From NCBI RefSeq assembly GCF_000143415.4, contig NW_003314278.1:2376408-2440407 (forward strand): a stretch of DNA of 64,000 nt, read 5' to 3'. Shown piece by piece: positions 5,919-63,109 of this stretch (the stretch's first letter is position 1; every line of letters starts with the position of its first letter). Source of the DNA: Selaginella moellendorffii. Taxonomy: Eukaryota; Plantae; Lycopodiophyta. Made by a program: the position numbers and the translations under genes. The notes beneath the pieces are model-generated. The model ran no database searches. It was not told where the DNA came from and saw nothing but the letters and a program-made list of their open reading frames with translations.

Positions 5919-7850
5919 ATGGCTATGGTAGAAGCGCGAGAAGATTGGGGAAAAACCTCCGACCTCGCATGGAGCAGCGGCGTGGCTCCCTGGTCGGTGC
6001 TCATCGCGGGCTTGCCCAGGAACTCCATGACGTCGCAGGCGCTCCAGAGCCTGGCCAGGGAGGCGGTGGGCGGATTCGAGATGGTCCCGGACGGCATGGA
6101 GCTTGTAAACTTTGCGCGGATCTTCTCTCCTCCCGGCGCCACCGCCGAGGAGGACTGCGCCGTGGTAGGCTTCTCCTGCGAGGCCGTGGCGGAGCTCTTC
6201 CTGGATTCGTGGCCCGAGCTCCAGCTCCCGCATGGCATCGAGAGCACCAAGTTGACGTTCGCGAGGAACTTCCGGTCGAGCAAGAGGGTGGATTCCAGGC
6301 AGGAGATAATGCACGACTTGGTTTGCTCGGCTCCGTCACCCCTCGAGGAGAGGTTTGTGGTTTACGTGAGTGGCTTGCCGGAGGAGTGGATCGATCAAGC
6401 GCGGCTCCGGGACTACTTTGCGCAGATCGTCAAGGAGTACCAGAGCGAGGAGGTGGTGAGGTCGGTTCACGTATCGTCGCTGCTCAAGGACGCGTATGTG
6501 GAGCTCACCAGCGACGTGACGGCGGATCTCGTGTTCTACAGGAGCAAGCGAGATAGACTTCTGGACAAGATCTCCAAGGAGGTGTTTATGTGTCGTGGAG
6601 TCGGCTCTATCCCCTTGCTCCACTGGAAGCTCCCCCGAATCAAAGCAGCAGCAGCGGAAGAAGCTAGTCTCAAAAATGGTGGCGAGAGTGAGAAGAAGGC
6701 CACCTTTCTGGACTTTCTCAAGAACCAGCCGGGTATTCCTGGAAAGGCTCTGGATCTAAACGTCCCCCCGCCACTGGCAAGCAATCCCGAGACCGCGCCT
6801 CCTCCTCCTCCGGCAAGCAGTCCGAAGGCCGCGCCTCCTCCTCCGGCGAGCACTCTCGAGGACGCACCTCCTCCTCCTCGTCCGGCAAGCAATCGCGAGA
6901 CCACGCATCTTCGTCCTCGTCCTGCTCTCGTTGCTGCTCCATGCGCGGGGAGAGCACTCAAGGTTGAGACCGAGAGGGACGACGCCAACTTCCAGTCCCG
7001 GGCTGCCAACTTCAACGTTGCTCCCATGCAACGGCCGTGCGAGAACAATCACGATAGCGCGATGACGAACAACGATACCATGTCCGTCTGCGACTCGGAG
7101 AGCGTGGACAGCTTTCAGAGAGGCCAGCGCTCCCGGAATGACAGTCTCAACCGCAGCTCCGTCTTCGTTGGATCCCTGGCCGAGCACAACCCGACCAAGC
7201 TCAAGGAGCTCTTCCACACCCTCCTCCGGAAGAGCATGCCGCTGGTGTCGCCCGACTCCATCCGCGTACGCTGGGCTCGGGGGAAGAGCTTCTGCCTGGT
7301 GGGGCTTCGATCCGAGAAGGCGGCACAGATGCTCATGGACGCATACATGGAGCACACCCGAGACGCTCACATACCGGGCTTTCCCCTGGCGATCTACAGG
7401 CACCGGGGATACCAGCGGCCTGGGACGGAGGTTTACAGTGATTCCTCCGTGGACGAGTCCGGCTTGGTGCTCGTCCAGGGGCTCCCCCCGCGTTTACACG
7501 CGTGCCTGGTCCAGGGAGCTCTCACCGAGCTGCTGGAGACGGCGCTGGCTGGCGCCAGGAAGTTCCACTCCAACATGGCCCGGAATTTCTTTTCCTACTT
7601 CAGGTATGATCCGATGTTTGGGACCGCCAGGGTGAGATTCAAATCCCGCGTCGCTTGCGAGCACTTGCTGACGCTCAAGAACTGCCGGCTGGAGCTCGCG
7701 GGTGGCGTCATAAGCTTGGAGCGCGAAGCGTCGCCGCCGGGGTTTGGCGATCACTTGGACCAGGATTTCATGGACGGGAACTGGAAGCGCAAGAGGCCGT
7801 TTAGCGCAGAACAGAGCCACGCCAAGCAAGCTAGACAAAGCTACTACTGA
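5919..7850 (+). CDS. Intronless 643-aa protein with about four degenerate RRM-like segments and a Pro-rich repeat linker
   Basis: Long GC-rich ORF; RNP2-like VLIAGLP, VYVSGLP, VFVGSL, VLVQGLP; RNP1-like KDAYVEL, KSFCLVGL, GTARVRF; KRKRP near the C-terminus. Confidence 0.6.
   Translation: MAMVEAREDWGKTSDLAWSSGVAPWSVLIAGLPRNSMTSQALQSLAREAVGGFEMVPDGMELVNFARIFSPPGATAEEDCAVVGFSCEAVAELFLDSWPELQLPHGIESTKLTFARNFRSSKRVDSRQEIMHDLVCSAPSPLEERFVVYVSGLPEEWIDQARLRDYFAQIVKEYQSEEVVRSVHVSSLLKDAYVELTSDVTADLVFYRSKRDRLLDKISKEVFMCRGVGSIPLLHWKLPRIKAAAAEEASLKNGGESEKKATFLDFLKNQPGIPGKALDLNVPPPLASNPETAPPPPPASSPKAAPPPPASTLEDAPPPPRPASNRETTHLRPRPALVAAPCAGRALKVETERDDANFQSRAANFNVAPMQRPCENNHDSAMTNNDTMSVCDSESVDSFQRGQRSRNDSLNRSSVFVGSLAEHNPTKLKELFHTLLRKSMPLVSPDSIRVRWARGKSFCLVGLRSEKAAQMLMDAYMEHTRDAHIPGFPLAIYRHRGYQRPGTEVYSDSSVDESGLVLVQGLPPRLHACLVQGALTELLETALAGARKFHSNMARNFFSYFRYDPMFGTARVRFKSRVACEHLLTLKNCRLELAGGVISLEREASPPGFGDHLDQDFMDGNWKRKRPFSAEQSHAKQARQSYY
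6764..6925 (+). repeat. ~36-bp coding tandem repeat (PPPPAS units, about 4 copies)
   Basis: Recurrent cctcctcctccggcaagc units encoding PPPLASNPETA / PPPPPASSPKAA / PPPPPASTLEDA / PPPPRPASNRET. Confidence 0.8.
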
Positions 7851-10450: not shown

Positions 10451-11983
10451 ATGGCAGATCAGCAATCTCCTCCTTTGACTCTCGAGCAGCAATTGGTCCA
10501 ATTGCTTGATGCTATGCGCTTGCAATTGAACTGTAAGCTCCTGAGTTTGGACTTCCCAGGAGGTCACCCAGCCCAGTACTATTCAAACCCAAGGACGCTT
10601 AACTCTAAATATCCCAAGACCCTTAACCGATTAGAAAAGGGGGTGCACTCTTGTTCATGGGCCCTTTCCCTCTATATTTGAACCCCTATGGATCGTCTCT
10701 CGAGTCGTTCCCTTTGGTTGCTTACAATCCACCACGCTTCCCTGCAAGTTCACGCCCTCGTGAACGGAAGCTGAAAGCCGCAGCTCTCCCGAGAGCCCCG
10801 CTCTCTTGACACCCTACCCCTCGGGTCGAGCCCAGTGGGAGCAAACTGGACCAGCCAGATGTCAATCAACATGTGGTGCGATTCCCCTAGCCAACCAACA
10901 GAGTCGGACCCGAGACCTCTCTGATACCAAATGTAAGCTCCTGAGTTTGGACTTCCCGGGAGGTCACCCAGCCCAGTACTATTCAAACCCAAGGACGTTT
11001 AACTCTAAATATCCCAAGACCCTTAACCGATTAGAAAAGGGGGTGCACTCTTGTTCATGGGCCCTTTCCCTCTATATTTGAACCCCTATGGATCATCTCT
11101 CGAGTCGTTCCCTTTGGTTGCTTACATGAACAACCAAACTCAATTGATGGCGGCATTCACGGCACGTGGTCCAACTCCTCCTGCTCTTGGTGCCAATCCT
11201 TGCGTTTGGCTGGAGTTCGTTCGTGGGAATCCCGGGGATGATGTGTACCATTGGTTCGATCACTTCACGGTGATTGCCACATATCATTCTTGGGATGATG
11301 CTCGACTTTTACGTGAGTTTCTCACATATCTCCAAGGGACGGCGTTGCAGTGGTATAATGGATTGAGTGCGGCCACTTGTGAGGATTGGAGTGTTCTTCC
11401 GGATGTCTTCAAACGCGCCTTCGGACATGCCGACAATTGTGACGATGCCTTCCAACAATTGCATCGTCTTCGCCAAGGGCCATCTGAGTCGGTGATGCAA
11501 TTTAGCGTTCGTTTCCGAAGTTTTTTGCTTCGTGCGGAGCCCAATATGTCGGAGCGGATCAAGCTAGGAATGTTGTGGCCAGCACTTCGTCAAGATCTTG
11601 TCGGCCTTGTGCATGCACTTGCTCCTGCCACCCTTGATGATGCTCTTCGCTTGGCACAACGTTATGAGACGTCGCCTCTTCCACTTCTCGCTGCACGTCC
11701 TTCCACTCCACTTTCTATGAGTGATGGTTCTATTCCCATGGAGGTTGATGCTGTTGCTCCTCGAGTCCAAGGACAAGGACAAGGACGTGGTCGTGGCCGT
11801 GATGTTTGTTGCTGGGCGTGTGATGAAGTTGGTCATACTTATCGGCGTTGTCGGCGCTTTCCGGATTGGCGACCTCTATTTCCTGGGTGGAGACCTTGGC
11901 GTCAACAACGTCCCGTTGGTGCTGCTGCAGTGGAAGGTTTGGACACCGAGATGAATCCGGGAAACGAGGAGTCGCGCGAGTAA
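10451..11983 (+). pseudogene. gag: gag of family A, interrupted by a TRIM insertion
   Basis: Removing 10532-11131 restores the frame MADQQ..LQLNNQTQLM..; Retrotrans_gag-like core (YLQGTALQWY, LRQGPSESVMQF) and zinc knuckle CWACDEVGHTYRRC. Confidence 0.9.
10532..11126 (-). mobile_element. Cassandra-type TRIM (595 bp) with a 5S rRNA-derived domain in both LTRs
   Basis: 195-bp LTRs 10532-10726 and 10932-11126 (TGTAAGC...GCTTACA, 3 differences); TSD TGAAC (10527-31 and 11127-31); PBS TGGTATCAGAG (initiator Met type); purine-rich tract before the 3' LTR; 205-bp non-coding interior; 5S box A to box C segment at 10549-10604 and 10949-11004. Confidence 0.95.
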
Positions 11984-12022
11984 TGGAGGGACCTTGTGCG
12001 AATAAGTCAGTGACCCCTCCAT
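11959..12022 (+). promoter_or_regulatory. Predicted -1 ribosomal frameshift signal (slippery heptamer plus pseudoknot)
   Basis: G GGA AAC in gag phase, 6-nt spacer, stem 1 11972-80/11993-12001, stem 2 11983-90/12015-22; pol is in the -1 frame. Confidence 0.8.
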
Positions 12023-15000
12023 CTTTCTTTCGGGAGTATCATCAAGGGGTTCACTCGGCACCAGTTCATCCAGTGTTTACTTTCCAAGCTCATCTTTATA
12101 ACAAGAGGTCTCCTATTATTCTCTCCGTGTTGGTTGATACAGGTTCGAGTTTATCTTCTATTGCTCGACCTGTTGCCACACGTTGTCGTCTACACTTGCG
12201 TCGTGCGGCAGAACTAGTTTTCATTCTTTATGGCAACGGCCGTACACATGCATGTGCACGGGATGAGGCAGACCTGGTTGTGCGTGTAGGCGATCTCGAG
12301 CTTGAGTTGCAGTCATTGCGGGTGGTGCCGAGTCAAGCTTTTGACCTCATTCTTGGTATGGATTGGTTGCAGCGCAATCATACCAAGTGTGACTTTGAGG
12401 CTTCTCCCCCTTGTCTCATACTTCCTTATGTTTCCTCCATTCCTCTCACATCTGTACCTCTTCGTCCCTCTACTTCTACCTCTGCTTCCATTACTTTTGT
12501 TCCCCCACTATTTCCTCCTGTGTTTCCATTTTGTTCTGCTCTTCCCTTTTCCGATCCCTTCGACGATCTTTGTGTTGCAGCAGTTGACCGGCTCATGAAG
12601 GAGTATTCTAATCTCTTTGACTTTGACCTATCGTCTGGAGCCAAGATTGCTATACGTCATCCGATTCCAACAGGGGATGCTCGTCCAATCAAGGTTTTTG
12701 TTCGTCGTCGGTCACCAAAGGAAATCAAGATTTTACATGCAAATGTCCAGGAGATATTGGAGAAGGGGGTTATTCTGAAGTCGCGAAGTCCTTGGGTATG
12801 TGAACCTCATCTTGTGACGAAGCCTGATGGGAGTATTCGTTTCTGCATCGACTATCATCCGTTAAACGACGTAACGATCCCGGATGTGTACCCTCTTCCT
12901 CACATTGTTGATCTCTTGGATCGTCTGGGGCGAAGTCGTTGGTTTACCAAGCTAGATCTTGCTTCTGGGTACTGGCAAGTACTGATGGCCGAAGAAGATA
13001 TTCCTAAGACTACTTTTCGTACACCATTTGGTTTGTATGAGTTCTTGGTGATGCCATTTGGTTTGAACAATGCTCCAGCAACTTTTCAACGGATGATGGA
13101 CGAGGTTCTTTGCGATATGCCGGAGGTGACTGCTGACTTCATTGATGATGTCTTGATCCACTTGGAGGGGACATGGGAGGAGCACGTTCGTGATGTTTGT
13201 AAAGTGTTGGATCGGCTACGTAACGTTGGTTTAAAGCTGAAGCGGTCGAAGTGCGTGTTTGGATCCAAGGACACAACTTATCTTGGGTACCGTATTTCTC
13301 GTGAGGGTTTGCAAGTTGATCCTGACAAACTTGTGGCTGTTCTAAAGTTCCTTACTCCGAAGTGTGTGAATGATGTGCAGCGCTTCTTGGGCAAGATGCA
13401 GTATCTTGGGCGTTTTGTGGATCATCTTTCTGATCGCACTACGCCATTGCGAGCGTTGCTGAAGTCATCAACATCATCTTTCATCTGGTCTCCGGATTAT
13501 GAGCGGGCGTTTGGGGATCTCAAAAAGTTATTAACAACTCCTCCGGTTTTGGCATATCCTGACTACACTCGACCTTTTATTTTGCGCGTGGATGCTTTTG
13601 ACATTGGTCTTGGAGGTGTGTTAATGCAAGAGAGCTCGAGTGTGCCTGGTCAATGCCATCCCATTGCATATATAAGCCGTACATTATAACCAGTGGAGAT
13701 GAACTACTCCACAACAGAGAAGGAGTGTTTAGCAGCAGTTTGGGGTTTCGAGAAACTTCATGCATATCTACATGGTTCTTGGACGTTACTTGAAGGTGAC
13801 CATACTGCTGTTACTTCGTTATTAAAGCGAAAGAACTTAGTTGGTCGTACTACTCGGTAGGCTTTGAAGCTTCAGATATATGATTTTGATGTTGTTCACC
13901 GCCTAAGGAGTTCTATGGCTGATGCTGATGCCCTTTCTCGAGCTCTTCTTCCTTCTTCATTCTCTTCTCATGTTTCTGACGAGCCTGTCGTTCCAGCATC
14001 TATGGATTTTCTAGACGAAGATTCTGTGCCGTCGGCGGTTGCTATACTTGACGTTCAGTGTCCACAAGGTGCAGAGCAAGATCTACCTTCGCTTGATGAG
14101 GTTCGCGAGGCTCAAAAGATTGAGCCATGGATTCGAAGGCTTCGAGATGGGTTTGAGAATCTTACATCACTTGCTGATGACTTGCCTTTCCGGCATTTAC
14201 ATTCTCAATATCGTCTTGAAGGTGGCCTTCTTTATTTTGTGGGGACAGATTCTGATGATCATTTACGGCTGGTGGTGCCTTCTATCTTTATTCCGCGGTT
14301 TCTCCATGCCTACCATGATTCTCCTATTCTAGGTGGGCATATAGGACATCGTTGTGTAATCGAGAAGCTACGCAGGTCTTTCTATTTGCCAGAGATGCGA
14401 CGTGATATTATCCGGTATGTGCGTAGCTGCGTTTGGTGCCAAGCTCGTAATACTCCCCCTCGGACTGCGGAAGGACGGTTGGAGTCAATTGCAGTTTCCC
14501 GTGCATTTGAATTGGTGGCATTTGATCTTATGGGACCTTTTCCACGGTCAACTGCTGGCAATGAGTATGTTATTATTGCTTCTAACTATTTGACTCATTA
14601 GGTGGAAGTTGGTGCTCTTGCTAGTGCCTCTGCAACTGCTGTTGGATACTTCCTCCTCAATCGAGTGGTGTTCCAACATTCTTGTCCAGAGCGGATTCTT
14701 TCAGATAATGGTCCCGCTTTTATGGCTGAGGCGTTTCATGTTTTGACGTCTCGGTTGGGGATTCGCCACACTTTCACGAGTGCTTATCATCCACAATCAG
14801 ACGGTCTGGTGGAACGGCTCGTTCGGATGTTCAAGGGGATGATTGCGAAGTATGTGAACTTTCAGCATTCGGATTGGGATGGTTATTTGCCGTCTCTTCG
14901 GTATGCATATATCACTGGGGTGCAGAGTTCTGTTGGTGCTTCACCATATAAACTCCTATATAGTCATGATCCAATATTACCAACGGAGCTGGGTTTACCT

Positions 15001-18729: not shown

Positions 18730-21700
18730 GCTAAGACACCTAAGGGTAGAAGGTGAGGAGAGTGTAGAGCCCCAGTGTTTCAAAACATTATCCCAAATCC
18801 TAGATTGGGGAAAGGAGGAAGAACAATTCTCATGTGTAATGACTAAAGATACAATCACATAGTGAGGAAGCCTAACGGTCAAGATTCCATAACATATGGC
18901 CTAGTCAAATGGTATGGTACAAATGGTCTTAGATTACTAATAAAATAAGGGTAAAAAAACATAGCCTTAGTGTAATAGGCTAAAATGTTAATAATACTTT
19001 TGGGGTGTTGGTCATAGGATTAGAAATATGGAGTATTTGGACCAAGTGCAAAGGCTAAGTGGTATAGATGTTATTTATGAGTTAGCATATTCCCAAGTCG
19101 TGAATAGAACTTATAAAGGTTGTGAGTGAGACTCCTTCAAATGATCAAAGATGTGGCTAAGTGACTAAAGTAGAAAGAAAAATTTAATCACTTACACTCA
19201 GTTATAAATATAGAACCATTATCTAAGAGAATCCACTTCAGATATGAATATTCGAACACCACTTAATTGAGAAGGAAGTATTCAATAGTAGTTGTAGATA
19301 CATTAGCAAGAGCACTAACATCCACCCAATAAGTTAAGTAGTCAAAAGTAATAATGATGTATTCATTGCTAGTAATCAATTTTGAAAAAGGCCCTATCAA
19401 ATCAAATACCACAAACTCAAACAAACATGAAACTATAATTCACTTCAACTATCCTTCCACAACATAAGGGGGAATATTATGAACTTGGCACTAAATGCAA
19501 TTGCATATATACTGAATAACATCATGTCATATTTCTAGTTAATAGAAAGACTTGTGTAGCTTCTTAGTCACACAACGATGTCCCATACGCCTTCTTAAAA
19601 TAGAGGAGTCATGAAAAAAGTATAAAATAAAGATCAAAAGCACCACCAATTGTAAATAATCATCACGATCAGTCCTCACAAAATAAAGAAGGTCATCTTC
19701 AAGGTGATATTAAGAATATAAATGCCAAAAAGGCAAGTCATCAACAAGTGATGCATAATTTTTAAATCCATCACAAATCCTTTGGATCTATAATTTAATT
19801 TTTTAAGCCTTATGAACTTTATTAGGAGAAGATAAATCTTGCTCTACATTTCATGAATACTAAACATCTAGTATAGCAATTGTTGATGGTATGGAATCCT
19901 TGTTTAAAAAACCCATTAATGCTAAAATAACATAGTCATAAAAAATATAAGAAGAGAGTTAAGAAGGAGATAAGCTCAAGAAAGGGTGTCAACATCAGCT
20001 ATAAAAACTCCCTAGGCAATGAATAACCTTAAAATCATATATCTAAAGCTTCAAAACCCACTAAATAATATAATCAATTAAATTCTTCCCTTTCAATAAT
20101 GAAGTAATTGCAATATGATAACCTTTAGTAAATTGGTTGCAATATATGGCTAATATATGTAATGGGATGACACTGACAAAGCATACTCATGCTCTTTTAT
20201 ATCAATACACCCCTAAGACTAATATCAGAAGCATCTATGCATAAAATAAAATATCATTTGTAATCAAAATATACCAAAATAGAAGGAGGCATTTAAGATC
20301 TATAAATGCCCATTTCTAGTTCTCAAATTAAATGAACAACAATGTTAACAACAATGTTAACAACTTTAGAAACACTCTCAATGGTGCAATATGATCAGAA
20401 AGATGATAAAGAAAATGATTGAAATATTGTACCTTGCCTAAAAAGTATTGCATATCATTCACACACTTTGGAGTAGGGAACTTTAGAATAACCACAAATT
20501 TATTAAGATTAACTTACAAACCTTTATAAGAAATATAATAAGTGGTAACCTTAGACCCAAATATGCATTTAAACCACTTATTAACTTCCCCAACCAATCC
20601 AACACCTTGCAAACATCACAAACATGCTCTTCCTATATCCCCTCAAAATAGATTAAGATATCATTGATGAAGTTAATAATCACCTTTCGCATATTGTAAA
20701 GAACCTTATTCATTATCTATTGAAAAGGCACTAGAACATTGTTTAAACCAAATAATATCATCAAGAATTCATACAAACTAAATAGTGTATAAAATATAGT
20801 TTTGGAAACATTTTCCTTAGCTATTAGTACTTACTAGTATCTAAAATTTAATTAATTAATTAATTAATTTCCTTTAATTTGGTAAATAAATAACTTCTTC
20901 CTAGACGATTCAATAGATAGTAGTGTGTACATATCTAGGGTAGTTACCTCATTTAATAGATGATAGTCGATGCCAAATTGATTCATCAAGCTTTATCACA
21001 ATATAAAGTTCACAAGTGTAAAGATTCTAAGACTTTCAGATAACACCTTTCATTAACATCTCTTTAATGTTTGTATATAAAATCTTGATTTCCTTTGATG
21101 ATCGATGCCAAACAAAAACCTTAATTAGATGAGCATCTCCTGTTAGAATAGGATGATACATTACAATCTTGGGCCCCAAATGATAGATTAAAGTCGAGAA
21201 GATTAACATACTTCTTCTTGAGCCGGTTAACCACTACAACATAAAAACTATCTAAGGGATATAAAAAGGGAATAAATTAGTAAGATGGAAACACAATAGG
21301 AAGTAAAAGGGTTATAAAAGTGATAAAAGTAAAAGGACATAGTGGTTCACTTTGAAATCCGAATCCAATTCTGCATTGACAATAATAGCGTGAAGCATTT
21401 TTCCTACTGCTATAATGAGAGGCTAGAAACAACAATCTTAGTTGGAGGGGATTGGTTACACAATAACGAGGAGAGGACCTCCATGCAACAATAGCATCAC
21501 TATTACTGGAGATTGTACACTCCTCATTAGTTCACCATACTATGGGATTTAAGACTGTACATCTTCAAGGGCATTTTGTAACTTTGAGAAACTTTAAGTG
21601 TTATATGGATGGAGATCAAGTGAGGTAGTGCCTCCACAAATTTTACAACTGACTTAAGTCCTTTACATTAATAGGTGTAGTCACATGGGAGAGATGAAGC

Positions 21701-22307
21701 TAGGGACTATAGATAAGGAATAAAGTTCACAACCACTAAAGATTGGGAGCATGTGTTTATGGAGTGAGCAGCATGGATCTGTGCTATATAGAACTAAACT
21801 CTAGTTCCCTTGATATAAACTGTACAAAACTAGACTCTAGTTCCTTTGATCCTTCTTTTGTCACTACCTCTCATATAACTCTTCATTTCTTGAAAGAAAT
21901 TTTATGTCAAATTACCATTGTAGTAGCATCAATAGAACATTGATGATGTTAAGGCTTCCATCTAGAAAATGAAGGATGTCAATTTGGAAAACACCAAAAA
22001 CACTTATATGTGTGGCCAACTTCATCACACATTTAACAATTAACATCACAGCCACAACCATATCCTTGTCCTTGCCCTTGAACACAAGTAGCAATAGCAT
22101 CCACCTCCATTAGAACAAGATCTATATAGCAATAAGTGAAATAAATAATGTCTCATAATGTTGTACCAGTTGAAAAGTGTTGTTAAGAGTGGTGAGAACA
22201 AATACATGCATAAGTTTCACAAGATTTTGATGAAATACTAGCGACAACATTCTTAATTTGATTTAAATCTAACCTACACATGCCATCATTTGGAAGGATA
22301 TGGGAAA

Positions 22308-22502
22308 TGTAAGTTTTTGAATTTGGACTTCTTGAAAGGTCACCCAGCTTAATATTATTCTAACCCAAAGACACTTAACCCCAAATATCCCAAGACTTTT
22401 AACCGATTGAAAAAGGGGGTGCATTCTTATTCATGGGCTCTTTCCCTTTATATTTGAACCCTATGGATCGTCTTTCTGAGTCATTTTCTTTGGTTTCTTA
22501 TA
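22308..22502 (-). mobile_element. Cassandra-type solo LTR within gag of the old A copy
   Basis: 195-bp degenerate LTR; flanks ggaaa/gaaaa. Confidence 0.8.
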
Positions 22503-22680
22503 GAAAACTCTCATAGATATAGGGCATCATCCCAATAATGATATCATTGTAAAATGATTGAACTAATTATATATATAATCCTTAGTATTCCCATAGAAGA
22601 ACTCTAGCTAGATGTGAGGATTAGCAGTAAAAGTAAAAGTTGCACAATATATTATAAATGCCACTATTAATTAAGTTTAA

Positions 22681-51651: not shown

Positions 51652-53521
51652 CGCGGGGAAGAAACCATTTTGAAATATTATTAAATTTTACTTAGTATTC
51701 ATTTAGACTTAGCTATTTAAAACTGACTTTTTACAGTTATGTTCATATCTACAATGTAGATTACTCTTGCTTTTATAAATTATAAACATGTTTATAATTT
51801 ATAAACAAATTATCTCTTGACATTCGTTGACGGTAATTTGCAATCCTTGTCCAAGATAGAGAACTGTCTAAACAAGAACAAAGTATATTTATGTGCTTGA
51901 TTCACCTAACAATTATATAAAACAGGGTCTCACGAGTCTGAGGAAGGGGAGTACTTGGGTCCTTTAACTCAGTGATTGTTTTCCTCAATGTATGCTATAC
52001 TTGCTGGCTTGTTCAAGTTTTAACATGCTAATTTGGCTTGCTGTTGCTTGGCAGAGTATCCATGGATCGTGTTTATTGAGCTTTGCATGCTCACTCTCTG
52101 TCTGTTAGGTGATGAGGCGACCTAGCTATTGAATTAGGGCTGACTGACTTGGTTGTCTATCCAAGCTGCAAACCCAGACTTGCCAAGTGTTTTTCTAGCT
52201 GGCTGACTAACCATTCCTTGGATTTGGAGAGCCAAGACTAGGGAATGTCTATAGTTATAGGATGAAACTTTAAATGCTTTCATCAGAAAAAAAAAAAAGA
52301 AAGAAAGTATTTTGTGCAGTGACTCGCAATCTTCCTTCGGAAGTTCCTTTGGGAGCAGCATGCCATTCGCCCCATATGATCCAAGTGGAGGCTAAATTAA
52401 AATAAGCTTCAACTGTGATGGAGTATGTCGGGAATTAGAGGGCTTTAGTTTACTTCTAGCTACACAAGTAGTGATTTGCAGTTCCAGCAAACGCTTCACA
52501 TATAAGATTTAAAAAAAGAGATGTAAGTTTACAAGTATAAAAGAAAAAATAAGAACTTACTATTGTAAAGATAGATGAAGCAGCAGGTAGGAAGTGCTGT
52601 TTAGATTCACTTCTTGATCTGGGAGAATCTTGGGAAGCGTTAGGATGTATGAAGCATGCAAGTTTGCGGCTTCCAGGATGTTTGGAGGCAAGTGTATAAT
52701 CTACTGGGCAAGGAAAAAAAATGCTTCCATGGATCATATGTGAATAATATTAAGCATGTAACACATAACAAGTAATTAGGTAATATAACAAATGATATGG
52801 TAAATGTGGATAAAAATAAATCAAACTTGTTAGAGCCATATTTATTTCCATATTAATAAAATGTTTAAGAATATAGTTTTAATATTATAATATATATTTT
52901 CACTTACTTAAAAAATTACTCAATTTTTTAATGCATCTATCAAGTTTTTCAAATTGGAAAAAATTAGTATTAAAAACTGAGCAACAAAAACTTTTTAGAA
53001 CCAATAAATCATTAAAGGTAAAACATTTAAATAGCAAAACCATAAATCAAAATATAAAGTTTATTTATAAGTATTTTATTTTTATTTATTTTAAAAAATC
53101 TTTTTTATATATATATAAATATAATTTTAACTAATCCTTGCCAAAAAATTTAACCATATTTTTTATTTTTATATTTATAGTTTATACTTTTTATAATCTA
53201 TTTTGTTTTTTATTGTATTATATTTTATATTTTACTGAGATTTACTTAATTTTTATCAGTTTAGTAACAAAACTCGTTTCTACATTTTTGTAAAGTAGTT
53301 TAAACTTAAATAGCCCTTCTTTAAAATATAGTATATAAAAATATTTACATTAAAATTTATAGCTTTCACCATACTTTCACTATTAACCATTATCAAAAGA
53401 AAAAGCATGAAGGGGTAGCTACCCACAACTCAACCCATGATATAATTTACAATTTAGGATAATAAAAGGTAATTCATGTTTTTAAAAATCAAAATTATGG
53501 CTGATTAACTCACTTTATATT

Positions 53522-53526
<5 letters not shown>

Positions 53527-53552
<26 letters not shown>

Positions 53553-53571
53553 CTATCTATCTATCTATCTA

Positions 53572-53604
<33 letters not shown>
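53527..53604. repeat. Compound microsatellite (ATGT)n(ATCT)n(AT)n in an AT-rich spacer
   Basis: Directly visible. Confidence 0.95.
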
Positions 53605-53606
<2 letters not shown>

Positions 53607-54189
53607 CTCTACACATAAAACGATAAGATTTTTCATTTGGATTTCAATTACTAATAAAGGAAATAAATAGTTAAAACAAGAACTATGCAAAATAGAACTC
53701 AAAAAGACTATATAAATATAGTATTCTTCTAAGTGGTTGAAATAACAATTGTACTTTTGTAATTTTGTATATAGTCCACCTATGTGGACACTTTCTCTCT
53801 AACCTCTTGCCTCTGGCTCAAGTACTCATTCTAGAGAACGCTTGTTGGCTTAACTGCCATTCTAGAATATTTCTACTTTTCACTCAACCCCAAGCGTTCT
53901 TCCAATAATTGAAACTTACAGTTAATGCTGGAAGATTAATCGGCACCACCTTGGCTAGAAACGACGTTCCAGCCCGATTGATATACGAGCCGGGGCAGAT
54001 AAGAAGGAAATTACTGTTCATCGAGATAGAGACGACGGGCATATTCTCCGGCGGCTGCATGGCCGCTGGCACGTGTCTGGCCAAGCTGGCTGGCGTCATT
54101 TGATTTTTTTTCCTTTGCGTCTATGCCTGTATGGAAAACACAGACAAGGCGAGTGTAGAACAAACACTGTTTTGTATTTTCACTCTCCA

Positions 54190-58502: not shown

Positions 58503-58787
58503 CTCGTAACAGTCGCTGGAAGAGTGAAGACCCGAGACCCAGGACTGAGAGAATGAACTTAACTAGGACGAAGCAGCGTGAAAGGTCGGACGAAAGAAGA
58601 TCAACATAGTAAACGTAGCTCTCGACTGAACGATGAGATCAAAGGAAGGAAAAAAAAACCAGAGAACTTAGCTGCAAGTGGAGAATGGAGATCGAACGGA
58701 AGAAGATCCATAGCAAAAGTAGTGAACTTAGCTCTGAACTGAAAGATCCGATCAAAGGAAGCAAAGAAAAAAAATAAACCAGAGCAC

Positions 58788-59993
58788 TTAGCTGCAAGAG
58801 GAGAATGGCAGTGGCGTGCTACACCATGGACACACCGTGGAAGGATCGCTCTCGAAGAAACTGGCCAGGCGCATGGTTGTCTGGAGGGAGATCTTATTGG
58901 AGGAGATCATGTGAGTCAGCACGTGACTCAGCTTCTTGTTCCAGAGGCCCTCCACGTAGGCGAGAACCACGTCCCACGTCGGCAGCCCCACGGCGATGGC
59001 GTCCAGGTAGACCTCGAGGAATAGCTGATCGTAGTCGCGCAGTGGCATGCCATAATCCTGCTTCATCCCTTCCAGCCGCCGCAAGAGTAGCGATCGATCG
59101 CCGCGGCAGCTCCCCCAGTCGTCGTTGGGCATGAAGAATCTGACGAGCTCGGTCTTGAGCTCCTTCCAGCTCCGGATCCCTGGCGCCCCCGCGCGGCGCT
59201 CCGGCGTGAGATTGGGGGAATTCTTGGATCGCGGCGCCCCGCCATTGCGATCTTGGTGGGCGATCTTGGATGTTGGATCGTTCTTGTTGCATGGCGATGA
59301 CGAGCCGGAGCCGACAATGCGCCACCACTTGTGCGCGGCGCCCGAGAGATGGAAGACCGCGCAGTCGATCTTTTCCTGCTCGCTCATCGATGGGCCGCAA
59401 ATCTGGAAGAAACCGTCCATCTTGCTCACCCATTCCTCGATCGCGTCCGCGTCCCACTGCCCCTCGTAGACGGGGAGATCCACGCCCTTCCACCTGAAAA
59501 TCTCTAGCCGCTGGTGATCGAGATCGGGATCCCAGGACGAACTGGAGAGGGAATCCGGCGATGCCGATCCTGGTGCCGGTGACAAGAATCCGCCCCAGCC
59601 ATTCTCGTCCTCGTCGTCCGCGAATGGAAATTCCGGGATCACCAGAGGCGAGGATCGGGGGGAGGATCTGGGCGAGCTTTGGGGCTGGATCCTCCGCGGC
59701 GAAGGCGAGGGCGACGGCTGCCGCGGCCGCTGCTCGATCGCGGGATTCTCCTCGTCGGAGCGCACGAAGAGAGGATTGGCGTGTTCTTGGGGCTGCTGCT
59801 GCTGCTGCTGCTGCTGCCGGGGCGGGATTGGGACGATCTTGACGGCGTAGTGGTGGCGAACATCACTGATGCGCGAGCAGCAGCCGCCAAGATTCAATCC
59901 CAGGCCCATCCTGGCGTTGCGCCTGGAATCCACGAACGAAGGCGCCATGGCGGGCCTGTAAAAGCCAGATTCTTTGCGCTCGCCGCTATTCAT
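58788..59993 (-). CDS. Stand-alone retrotransposon Gag (capsid)-domain protein, ~401 aa, candidate domesticated gene
   Basis: LPVYEG..AIEEWVSKMDGFF..EKIDCAVFHLSGAAHKWW..SWKELKTELVRFF..MKQ..LRDY..YVEGL; intact ORF; no LTR, PBS or pol seen nearby. Confidence 0.8.
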   Translation of the reverse strand: MNSGERKESGFYRPAMAPSFVDSRRNARMGLGLNLGGCCSRISDVRHHYAVKIVPIPPRQQQQQQQQPQEHANPLFVRSDEENPAIEQRPRQPSPSPSPRRIQPQSSPRSSPRSSPLVIPEFPFADDEDENGWGGFLSPAPGSASPDSLSSSSWDPDLDHQRLEIFRWKGVDLPVYEGQWDADAIEEWVSKMDGFFQICGPSMSEQEKIDCAVFHLSGAAHKWWRIVGSGSSSPCNKNDPTSKIAHQDRNGGAPRSKNSPNLTPERRAGAPGIRSWKELKTELVRFFMPNDDWGSCRGDRSLLLRRLEGMKQDYGMPLRDYDQLFLEVYLDAIAVGLPTWDVVLAYVEGLWNKKLSHVLTHMISSNKISLQTTMRLASFFESDPSTVCPWCSTPLPFSSCS

Positions 59994-60734
59994 TGGCAAG
60001 AACACGAAGAACAAGGGCTCGCGCGGGGGAAAAGAAAACTCTGGGAAGAACACTAGCCCTAAGGAAATTTGACTAGTTCCGAACGTTGACGTTGACTAAC
60101 ATACACTCCTTTCAATGGCCCTTCTTTACACTAGAAGGAGCCTTGCATGGTCGGTATGCTGCACGACTTGATCCACATGTGCACCGAGTATGGAGCGTGG
60201 AGTGAGCAAGATTCTCAAACAACTCATAACACAGTTGCATTTTTGCATCCATCAATCTCATGCTTTAATAATGGGCACCACCAGATTATCAAAACAGAGA
60301 TAGAAAGATAGTGAACGCCAGGTTTCACTGCTGCATAGTTTTCAGGTCCTTGTTTGCTCTATGAAAGCCACCATAGCAGACAAATGTGCCTTCTCCTCAA
60401 GCACTCTTTGTCCAGCTTGCCAGAGCCTTAGAGAACAACGCAAGAAAAAGAAAAGTAATGAGAGTTTCCACGAAAACTCATGAAGAACAAGACAAGCAAA
60501 AGAAAACTAGGCATACTTTCAGTATCCTAGAGGCTTAGATTGCTCAAGAAGATGTGGCATACTTTCAATACCCGCTAGGCTTAGATTGCTCCATGCTGTT
60601 CCAACAACACCACCTGGGGACTGTGTTTTCCCCTAATTATTTCAGTTTCACCACATATGGTCTTTACATTATTTGTGGTAGATATCTCTACGGTGAAGAT
60701 ATGATTATTGAGGTGCCGTCATTGTTCTTTCTGG

Positions 60735-60990
60735 ATGAAGCATTGATCAGTTGGACCAGCGAGCAGCAAACTTCTATAGCTCTCTCATCAACAAAAGTTG
60801 AGTACACTAAAGCCTTGGCAGTACAAAAAGCAGTGTGGCTACAAGAAACAAATCAAAAGTCAAGCTCCACCTCTAGTGAAGAGTGACAAGCCATCTAACT
60901 ATGGAATCTGAGGTATCACTCAGATAAAACACTTTGATATCAAATTCAAGAGCAGGTACGCAAGAAGATTTCCTGGAGCATATCTCTACT
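60735..60990 (+). pseudogene. Ty1/Copia RNase H remnant
   Basis: LISWTSEQQTSIALSSTKVEY..AVWL resembles the Copia ISW.SKKQ.SVALSSTEAEY motif. Confidence 0.75.
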
Positions 60991-61499
60991 AAGTGCAACC
61001 AAAAGCATCTGATCTGTATATATAGTAACTCTATTGTAACTAAAATTGTGATGAGCTTAGTATATCTGCAGTCATTTCCTAGGTGGAGATATATAATCCA
61101 TTCAAATTTTGCTTGATGGCACTTCGATTGTCACATCTTTACTGAATATGAATTTGAATTTAGCACTATAGCCAACAGGCAGTTTTCACCCTTTTTCCCA
61201 GTTAAAACCTGTAAAACAGGTTTACCAAACTGGTTTATTTTTCAGTCCGATTATTATTTTACCAATTTAAAAGATTCAATCAATATATTCTTTTGAATAG
61301 AGACTTTATTGCTTTTTTAACCTACCTTTTCCCAAAGAGTAAAAGTATTTTTCAGTTTTTAACGCCCATGTTTAATTCTATAATTTTCAAAATGTTCTAT
61401 TTTCCATTCGAGAAAGTTATATGAAATTTCTGCCCTAAACATAAGAGTTGATGATATTCTAAACTCACGCTTTTTGAGTCTGTAACCTTATGATTTTTA

Positions 61500-62950
61500 G
61501 AACAGCAGCTGCATAGATGACGCCACAAGGCTGTTCGATGCAGATAGCCATGATCACCGCTTGTGCCGACCGCCCGTTTGGACGACACGGCAAGGTTCCC
61601 AGAGCAGGACATGTTCTCTTGGGATGCCCTCCTAGCCCCACTGCATTTGGACGTGGTGTCAACACTGATATCGGGTGGTACCCAATATCAGTGTCAGTAT
61701 CGGTGGTTTCCTCCACCAGGCCAAGAGACTCTCTGATAGAGTGCTGGATCGAAGCGTGATGCTGTGGACATCGGCCTCCAGGTTTGCATTCCTGGGCTGG
61801 TGTCTGTGGCACCCAAGGCTGAAAAGCTAGCGCTGTGTGAGATGGCCCTGCCTGCCTCAAGAAGCATCACCCCTCCTGGGTTCAGTTTTTTCCCCATTCT
61901 ACAACCAAGAAGCAAGTTTGTGTGACTAATGTTGGTTGGGCAATGAACAAGATCAAAACACTGGCAAGCTGAGATAAGAGGGGTACTCATCTTCGTCTTG
62001 AATCTGCAGGGCCTTCTCTACTTCAGGCTTTTCCAAACACGTCAAACACGTCGTGCTCTACCGTGGAGGTTGATGGGCTCGAGTTGGAACAAGCCATCAA
62101 TCTTCTCAATGGCCAAGATCTGCCACAATGGGAACGTGACATCGACATGCATTCTGGAGGAATGGAGGTTGATGGACTCGAGTGAGGGATCTCGATAAAT
62201 CCACACCAAGCCAAAGAGCTATGGAAAGCACTGGCAAGGCTGGATTACTAGATTAAGAACACTCCAACTGGATGTTTTTGCGAAAATCTCCAAGCCTGTG
62301 GTTTTTTTTTATGTATGAAGCTCAAATAGGGACTTGAGCAATCCAACCAGATCCAAAAATCAAATTCCACTAAATGGATATTTCCTAATTTTTGAAGTTA
62401 ATGTTTTTTACAGAAACAAAGAACAAAAAGTTATTTGAGCTAGAAAAAAAGAAAAACTGGGATCATCCAACGAGCTCTGTCTTTAGCTGACAATTATGTG
62501 TTGTATTTATCATCATTGGCATCCAAACCCTGTGTTCTTGGTTGCTCCAAGATGCTAAGCCTTGCAAGTCAGGATTTATCAGAGAACATTTGAGTGAAAG
62601 GAATACAAAGTTGAAAAACAAAGCTGGTTTTAGAATGCAAACCTGGAGGCCAAGCTACAAATGTCGTGGTTCCACTCCCGGGCAAGTATATCAATGTGCA
62701 AAACCACATTGGAACCATAGTCTTCTCTCCCATGCCACCGCTATATGAATCGACATCACAGCTTTGGGAGGGCAATGAAGGCTATGGTCTCCATCTGGCG
62801 ATGGTGATGGAGTGGCAATGCCATCAATTCGTGTGTGAAACAAAGACGCAATTTCCTGCAGCTCCATCCCCCAAGAAGGTAGAGCTTGCTGCCCAGAGCC
62901 TGGCACACGAATACCCATGCCTTTGGTGAGGAGGAATCCAGTGCCACTGG
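61500..62950. pseudogene. Scrambled kelch-repeat gene fragments plus a possible Copia gag scrap
   Basis: CQALGSKLYLLGG (minus strand, ~62860-62910); MQTWRP segment present in both orientations (~61780 and ~62640); LNGQDLPQWERDI at ~62105. Confidence 0.45.
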
Positions 62951-63109
62951 GTATCAAAACCTCTTATCGTCCAAGACTTGTCTGGCTCTGGAGTCTGGCG
63001 AATAGTTGATGATCAACTGCGAAAGGAGCAGCGCAAGTCTCCCGCACAGGGAAGCGTGCTGGATAGATGAGCTAAGCACCGGCAATGCGCATTCTTCTTG
63101 CTATCACTA

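Follow-up and report, generated by a model that had tools for sequence, protein, structure and literature searches.

A gag-only open reading frame in the lycophyte Selaginella moellendorffii as a probable, lineage-restricted cooption

Introduction

Is a retrotransposon capsid sequence that stands alone beside plant genes a gene of its host, or a piece of a dead element that still happens to be open? An open reading frame (ORF) from the lycophyte Selaginella moellendorffii raises this question. It lies in a stretch of 64,000 nucleotides (RefSeq assembly GCF_000143415.4, contig NW_003314278.1, positions 2,376,408 to 2,440,407 of the forward strand), which is called the window here and supplies the coordinates used throughout. 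The ORF is intact and intronless, and its coordinates include the stop codon.

58788..59993, minus strand: whole ORF; 401 amino acids (aa) from the ATG at 59993, 386 aa from the ATG at 59948, and 373 aa from the ATG at 59909

The original prediction, drawn from the letters of the window, was of a capsid protein coopted by the host. The stranded Ty3/gypsy capsid part resembles a host gene more than a dead transposon, both in appearance and in its evolution. The reading that we favor, with modest confidence, is of a gag-only gene that has been resident in the genome for so long that its identity to every known gag has fallen to 30% or less, has kept its capsid (CA) fold and its frame, uses host-like codons, and shows a deficit of nonsynonymous and indel differences. 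The locus is a probable, as yet unproven, case of lineage-restricted gag cooption.

Descent from a Ty3/gypsy capsid

The capsid pattern that drew attention to the ORF lies where it was first placed: the coordinates were right, and every motif quoted for it is present between aa 173 and 350. The motifs are LPVYEG (aa 173-178), EEWVSKMDGFF (186-196), LSGAAHKWW (216-224), SWKELKTELVRFF (275-287), KQDYGMPLRDY (311-321), and YVEGL (346-350). They are distributed over two lobes, followed by a short tail.

59133..59477, minus strand: capsid N-lobe, aa 173-287; four predicted helices; W188, W223, and W276 invariant in gags, W224 nearly so
59172..59288, minus strand: insertion of 39 residues, aa 236-274; lineage-specific, between N-lobe helices 3 and 4, predicted to be disordered, GC-rich
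58848..59096, minus strand: capsid C-lobe, aa 300-382; five predicted helices
58791..58832, minus strand: C-terminal tail CPWCSTPLPFSSCS, aa 388-401; occupies the place of the linker and nucleocapsid (NC)

The Retrotrans_gag profile (PF03732, PEG10_N-capsid) matches the product with 29.8 bits (E=7e-7), above its curated gathering cut-off of 24.1, and it matches the allele on the other haplotype, described below, with 29.5 bits. The match falls into two stretches because the insertion divides it. Profile searches had been suggested as a check, and the second of them came back empty: Ty3_capsid (PF19259) has no match to the candidate even at E up to 10, whereas it does match the gag from the window's intact-looking counterpart, the genuine gypsy element, and the product of LOC112348553, a second gag-only gene of the species.

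The capsid half was aligned with its ten best gag relatives and the gag of the window's genuine gypsy element (11 rows used for AlphaFold2). The gag tryptophans are invariant in this alignment, and the candidate carries insertions of 7 and 4 residues in addition to the 39-residue insertion after KWWR, which had been put at about 40 residues between KWWR and IRSW. Turned into a profile, the alignment has sequence matches in the Protein Data Bank (PDB) to dArc2, dArc1, the Ty3 capsid, Arc, PNMA2, and PEG10. The single sequence, searched against the PDB, returned only low-complexity noise to MCM3.

Structure prediction, likewise suggested as a check, gave a retroelement capsid fold. AlphaFold2 places nine helices at a predicted local distance difference test score (pLDDT) of 75-87 and leaves both the 39-residue insertion and the second, short one disordered, for a mean pLDDT of 65.8. 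The best 50 Foldseek matches in the PDB are all retroelement capsids (Arc, dArc1, Copia, PEG10, and HIV CA); the best of them has E = 0.017, and none reaches E<=1e-3. In a viral library, the weak matches are to retroviral Gag and to caulimovirid coat proteins. The C-lobe modeled alone (aa 296-401) reaches a pLDDT of 83 and a predicted template modeling score (pTM) of 0.75. This model superposes on the Copia capsid (TMq 0.64, root mean square deviation 3.3 Å), the C-terminal domain of the PEG10 capsid (CA-CTD; TMt 0.69), and the Arc C-lobe, and its TM values with the CA-CTDs of the restriction factors Ty1 p22 and Drt2 are 0.57-0.67; for the C-lobe, too, no Foldseek E-value is better than 0.017.

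The helices, the capsid-only fold matches, the C-lobe superpositions, and the profile matches to PDB capsids together support the capsid fold. Descent of the ORF from a Ty3/gypsy capsid, with loss of NC, pol, and the long terminal repeats (LTRs), is supported, as is a predicted two-lobed, all-helical CA fold.

A gag that stands alone

No CCHC knuckle was found in the candidate by alignment, as the original prediction had it; the metagenomic gags and the gag of the window's gypsy element have one. The tail has the spacing C-x2-C-x4-P-x3-C and ends 14 residues after its first Cys, at the place where the aligned transposable element (TE) gags have CxxCxxxGHxxxxC. A degenerate knuckle in CPWC...C was considered; with this spacing, a position 7 residues past the last CA helix, and repeat-derived codons, it was treated as unproven. 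The repeat in question lies between the gag and the next gene and extends into the end of the ORF.

58583..58808, no strand assigned: ~113-bp unit in two repeats of 77-83% identity; 3' intergenic space, where the gag and kinase genes converge

The last copy of the unit supplies the final six gag codons and the stop. Because these codons lie inside a repeated non-coding unit, the gag-derived sequence ends approximately where the linker and NC would begin.

Between the gag stop and that of the convergent kinase ORF (58502) lie 285 bp, close to the predicted ~290 bp. No pol sequence lies in these 285 bp, and tblastn with the pol of the window's gypsy element finds nothing near the ORF. No LTR-like repeats, sought as direct repeats of at least 40 nt, flank it within 52-64 kb. 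A second copy is found neither in the window nor in the two further stretches that were searched, one from scaffold GL377568.1 (L002, the other haplotype) and one from GL377595.1 (L003), and the annotated proteins show only the two alleles.

The description of the locus as lying among housekeeping genes suits one side of it. The genes on the 3' side are kinase, RNase PH, CBS, GRAS, and PPR genes; on the 5' side, the stretch at 60.0-63 kb consists of TE debris depleted in CpG, with a copia-type RNase H-like fragment in it. This debris (60001-63000) is common to both haplotypes, has many indels, and contains a 46-bp direct repeat at 60500-60591. The RNase H-like ORF fragment, at 60554-60886 on the plus strand of the CpG-depleted patch, has no Pfam match, and we take it to be of copia type from a conserved motif. 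The region at 52000-54000 is very AT-rich and rich in TA microsatellites (GC 0.18-0.42) and lies near where haplotype collinearity breaks down.

Genuine gypsy elements occur elsewhere in the window. The one at 11051-14601 on the plus strand is largely open and has a gag with CCHC, protease, reverse transcriptase, RNase H, and the integrase zinc-binding domain; its GC content at third codon positions (GC3) is only 0.33-0.43, and its observed/expected CpG ratio (CpG o/e) is 0.85-0.95. An older, broken, AT-rich copy at 19329-22676 on the minus strand, in a region of 28-39% GC, has 41-58% aa identity to it. On the other haplotype, a gypsy insertion at L002:18878-21153 (GL377568.1), ~8 kb from the gag allele, is haplotype-specific and has 85-87% aa identity to the element at 11051-14601; haplotype collinearity stops at this insertion. 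The gypsy family of the window has probably been active recently, and its recurrence on the other haplotype indicates that active TE families are easy to spot even in a small sample. A further ORF of 643 aa at 5919-7850 on the plus strand has a host-like GC3 of 0.76 and no Pfam match at E<=1e-3.

The allele and the deposited records

The thought that the protein might be undescribed did not hold up. The ORF product matches GenBank EFJ27556.1 (SELMODRAFT_412422), filed as a hypothetical protein, at 100% over the common part; the contig of that record is scaffold GL377582.1, whose bases 2,425,335-2,446,355 are identical to the window over 15 kb. The other member of its 90% cluster is EFJ35728.1 (SELMODRAFT_405327), which is UniProt D8QWZ9, "Retrotransposon gag domain-containing protein." The model of EFJ35728.1 is intronless, has 384 aa, and begins at MAPSF. 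On GL377568.1 this ORF is intact, 98% identical, and set among the same neighbors (PPR, kinase, RNase PH, and CBS), and the scaffold is collinear with the window for >10 kb at 92-97% identity. The shared neighbors and the collinearity identify EFJ35728.1 as the allele on the second assembled haplotype. The ORF is therefore already known as sequence, as a hypothetical protein with an allele labeled as gag-domain in UniProt. Neither locus identifier is mentioned in any searchable paper.

The EFJ27556.1 model differs from that of its allele by a proposed intron.

59058..59328, minus strand: deposited "intron" of EFJ27556.1, 271 nt; the model has 249 aa, and the allele model is intronless

This intron is probably a misprediction, since it shifts the frame and removes conserved gag helices (half of the capsid N-lobe). 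The 39-residue insertion was separately considered as an unrecognized intron and rejected: it is GC-rich, in frame in both haplotypes, free of indels between them, and without an in-frame GT..AG solution.

Composition and constraint

Codon composition sets the ORF beside its host neighbors. GC at codon positions 1, 2, and 3 of the candidate is 0.58, 0.49, and 0.79, and GC3 values in the window are as follows.

Candidate ORF: GC3 0.79
GRAS: GC3 0.78
RNase PH: GC3 0.72
Window gypsy gag: GC3 0.42
Window gypsy protease-reverse transcriptase: GC3 0.43
Window gypsy integrase: GC3 0.33

CpG o/e is 1.05 over the ORF and, in successive 500-bp bins upstream (60001-63000), 0.57, 0.24, 0.46, 0.46, 0.51, and 0.35. 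This step at the 5' edge indicates that the ORF escaped the C-to-T decay seen in the adjoining TE debris, as the original prediction had noted.

Selection was tested between the two haplotypes of one plant with Nei-Gojobori counts (NG86) and a one-sided binomial test against neutrality. The alleles differ by 11 substitutions and one 6-bp in-frame indel in a CAG tract. With S=275, N=919, Sd=6, and Nd=5, dS is 0.022 and dN is 0.0055, for an omega of 0.25 (binomial P=0.023). The neighboring RNase PH gene has dS=0.028 and dN=0.0035 in the haplotype comparison; the similar dS places the synonymous divergence of the gag ORF at the local neutral rate. In the collinear upstream non-coding DNA, mismatches amount to 2.46% and a gap opens once per 135 bp. 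The expectation per 1203 bp is 29.6 mismatches and 8.9 indels, and 11 and 1 are observed (P=8e-5 and 1.3e-3); indels and substitutions are 3- to 9-fold rarer in the ORF than in the adjacent non-coding DNA.

The N-terminal half, upstream of the capsid, has the following features.

59502..59993, minus strand: N-terminal half, aa 1-164; low-complexity, S/P/R/Q-rich, without a detectable homolog
59793..59816, minus strand: CAG repeat encoding polyQ, aa 60-67; holds the one indel between the haplotypes, 6 bp, in frame
59646..59714, minus strand: Ser-Pro-Arg repeat tract, aa 94-116; contains a 12-bp tandem repeat

All four substitutions in this half are synonymous third-position changes, with 0 nonsynonymous (P=0.003, for a split made post hoc).

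Relatives

Relatives of the candidate are few and distant. An exhaustive HMMER search of 1.84e9 representatives gave 11 hits: the self cluster and ten weak matches (E>=3e-7). One of the ten, an abalone VWA/EGF protein (P0003), is spurious, and the remainder are TE-type gags with E from 3e-7 to 7e-4. Word-indexed searches of 5.8e9 clusters with the whole protein, the capsid region, and a capsid piece returned the self cluster only, without a paralog or fragment; the whole-protein search was flooded by low-complexity words and had the self match alone among 8000 candidates. A scan of metagenome contigs found no relatives. The protein-cluster and metagenome searches thus give no annotated paralogs and no orthologs, and identity of the candidate to any other gag is 30% or less. 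In a small tree, from which two short fragments (P0006 and P0009) were excluded, the candidate has a stem of 2.15 changes per site, and its sister status with LOC112348553 is an unresolved polytomy.

LOC112348553 (XP_024537088.1, P0004), the second gag-only gene, is the candidate's nearest relative in S. moellendorffii and lies at L003:8001-8912 on GL377595.1. Its product of 303 aa matches Retrotrans_gag with 66 bits and Ty3_capsid with 50 bits, lacks CCHC, and ends directly after the CA C-lobe. The gene has a GC3 of 0.80 and is flanked by Cu-oxidase and ribosomal L18 genes; pol is absent for 8 kb around it. Solo gag ORFs of host-like composition may be recurrent in the S. moellendorffii genome.

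Relic or host gene

Several points weigh against a maintained host gene. The selection test is built on only 11 substitutions, and the capsid half, with 2 synonymous and 5 nonsynonymous differences (omega ~0.7), is consistent with neutral change; a comparison of the halves by Fisher's test, on the split made after the fact, gives P=0.06. The per-half counts point to a constraint signal that is real but thin and that lies outside the capsid domain. No ortholog in another species was found in the metagenome contigs or in the protein databases, where lycophyte genomes are thinly represented. Copy number was judged from annotated proteins and ~100 kb of DNA only. Although the chance of 401 stop-free codons is ~9e-6 on base composition alone, frames stay open more easily in GC-rich DNA, and several further ORFs, of 83-199 aa, lie across the candidate in its other frames. 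Only GenBank EFJ records turned up, with two deposited models that disagree, and the other solo gag of the species has a RefSeq XP_ record. Exact-product look-ups for assembled transcripts, with the 401-, 386-, and 399-aa versions, found none on record.

These points can be put together as a neutral relic. A gag fragment would have been stranded fairly recently by deletion of a gypsy element and would be unexpressed, with a stop codon not yet acquired and the high GC helping to keep it open. In favor of such a relic are the lack of an ortholog outside S. moellendorffii in the searches above, the 5 nonsynonymous against 2 synonymous differences of the capsid half, the long ORFs in other frames of the GC-rich stretch, the inconsistent gene models with no RefSeq record seen, the TE debris against the 5' side, and a 3' end that runs into a repeated non-coding unit. 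It is harder to reconcile with the omega of the whole ORF and the purely synonymous changes of the N-terminal half, or with a single in-frame indel where about nine are expected. A recent gypsy origin would also not predict a GC3 so far above that of the window's gypsy elements, the sharp CpG step at the 5' edge, or an identity of 30% or less to other gags at which the fold and the 401-codon frame are nevertheless retained. We regard a relic of this kind as the main rival, possible but on the doubtful side. Should the ORF prove to be an undecayed relic, it would be an everyday product of TE turnover and mainly a warning that a GC-rich open frame with a Pfam gag match is insufficient for calling domestication.

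The host-gene reading, which we prefer, keeps part of the case made for it by the original prediction. Haplotype synteny, the low omega, the deficit of indels, and the composition speak for cooption by the host, though only indirectly; the missing ortholog and the neutral-like capsid half do not.

Starts, a putative membrane anchor, and possible particle formation

In the ORF listing, the minus-strand frame opens with the first GTG at 60053 and runs to 58788. The ATG at 59948, from which the product starts with MAPSF, is in the best start context, GCCATGG, and is where the deposited model of the allele begins. The internal start that had been proposed is indeed present as the third in-frame ATG, at 59909; it has A at -3 and G at +4, and its product starts with MGLGLNLGGCCS.

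59874..59909, minus strand: MGLGLNLGGCCS motif, aa 29-40; putative N-myristoylation/palmitoylation site only if the third ATG starts translation

MGLGLN at the start of this product fits PROSITE PS00008 and is followed by CC. The Gly-2 pattern G-{EDRKHPFYW}-x(2)-[STAGCN]-{P} is matched only from the ATG at 59909, with those at 59993 and 59948 upstream of it.

A rival reading is a capsid former like Arc or the PNMA proteins. The product would assemble into virus-like shells, hold to membranes through a myristoyl-Gly2 and palmitoyl-Cys anchor when translated from the ATG at 59909, and move RNA or protein from cell to cell. In its favor, both CA lobes are predicted, the nearest solved folds include the assembling capsids Arc, dArc1, PEG10, and Copia, and mammalian Arc and PNMA2 are also without a zinc knuckle. 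The anchor, however, depends on a start that has two in-frame ATGs upstream, the second in the stronger-looking GCCATGG; the 39-residue disordered loop and the 7-residue insertion break up the CA lobes, and the capsid half has no constraint signal. Particle formation of this kind is improbable. A broader form of the idea, in which the locus would be an independent lycophyte gag domestication, the first outside angiosperms among plants, and the product a membrane-anchored, self-assembling counterpart of Arc, maybe in a family with LOC112348553, is a long shot.

A still-mobile non-autonomous element or an endogenous caulimovirid, as opposed to a fixed host locus, is the least probable reading: gag-only non-autonomous LTR elements exist in plants and caulimovirid coat proteins are among the weak top viral-fold matches, but neither LTRs nor terminal repeats of another kind occur in 52-64 kb, both haplotypes have the ORF at the same position while the real gypsy insertion 8 kb away in L002 is haplotype-specific, no second copy appears in the window or the annotated proteins, and a caulimovirid coat protein is rejected at the sequence level by matches to the Metaviridae-type gag family PF03732 instead of caulimovirid coat families.

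A proposed history and role

A history that fits the favored reading, a retained gag-only host gene, can be outlined. A Ty3/gypsy (Metaviridae) element would have lost its nucleocapsid knuckle, protease, reverse transcriptase, integrase, and LTRs, leaving the gag. The remnant would then have been retained at one locus, with a decayed TE patch on one side and a receptor-type kinase gene on the other. Its product of 386-401 aa is predicted to have ~170 disordered S/P/R/Q-rich residues at the N terminus, followed by a two-lobed CA with a 39-residue loop in the N-lobe. Selection would have maintained the ORF as a host gene, and the product may act through self- or hetero-association of its CA lobes. 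Without NC, it would not be expected to package RNA as a transposon Gag does.

By analogy with known Gag derivatives such as Ty1 p22/Drt2, Fv1, or RTL8, our best guess is that the protein would serve as a Gag decoy or as a restriction-type factor acting on related gypsy elements, or else as a scaffold; an Arc-like, RNA-carrying capsid is less likely. We infer this preference for a decoy or scaffold over particle formation from the disordered insertions in the lobes and the relaxed or diversifying change in the capsid half. If selection does maintain this gag-only gene, the lycophyte locus would extend plant gag cooption to an early-diverging vascular plant and offer a single-exon test case for plant capsid-derived proteins, whether in TE restriction, as scaffolds, or as particles.

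Comparison with known systems

The animal proteins Arc, dArc1, PNMA2, and PEG10, all derived from Metaviridae, share with the candidate a two-lobed CA and a gag origin, and they are among its nearest solved structures. The origins are independent and pairwise identity is 12-20%. The candidate also has a disordered N-lobe insertion and a low-complexity N terminus, where Arc has a coiled-coil domain instead.

Ty1 p22 and Drt2 in yeast, Fv1 in mouse, and RTL8 in mammals resemble the candidate as truncated Gags in which CA is kept and NC and pol are gone. They are CA-only Gag derivatives that poison the assembly of related elements, an activity that was shown experimentally (PMC10951436, PMC11684626). 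The lineages differ, with RTL8 as the exception: p22/Drt2 and Fv1 come from Ty1/copia or ERV-L lineages, and RTL8, like the candidate, from Metaviridae. Related gypsy elements are active in the genome of the candidate, as the haplotype-specific insertion indicates; an active gypsy family with a gag similar to the candidate was not found in the DNA and proteins searched.

Within the species, LOC112348553 is the closest parallel in kind, as a gag-only gene in a host-gene setting that is without CCHC, ends after the CA C-lobe, and has a high GC3. The two products have 26% identity over 178 residues, and that of LOC112348553 is shorter, lacks the 39-residue insertion, and has the stronger Pfam match.

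Among plants, the best comparison is with the cooptions described by Wang & Han 2021 (PMC8321522), whose systematic screen, the only one found here, covered 2,011 eukaryote proteomes and identified four plant gag cooptions, Crtg8-11, all in angiosperms. Their evidence was synteny or a phylogeny spanning two or more plant families, together with selection tests, and the text makes no mention of Selaginella or lycophytes. Crtg8 and Crtg11 are like the candidate in being plant gag-only genes of Ty3/gypsy derivation, without pol or LTRs, among host genes. The candidate is not an ortholog of any Crtg gene, as no angiosperm protein is closer than E=3e-7. The Crtg genes have cross-family evidence, whereas the candidate is known from two haplotypes of one lycophyte only, and a screen demanding conservation above the family level would have missed it. 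If functional, the candidate would be a new, lineage-restricted case of a kind of event that is already known.

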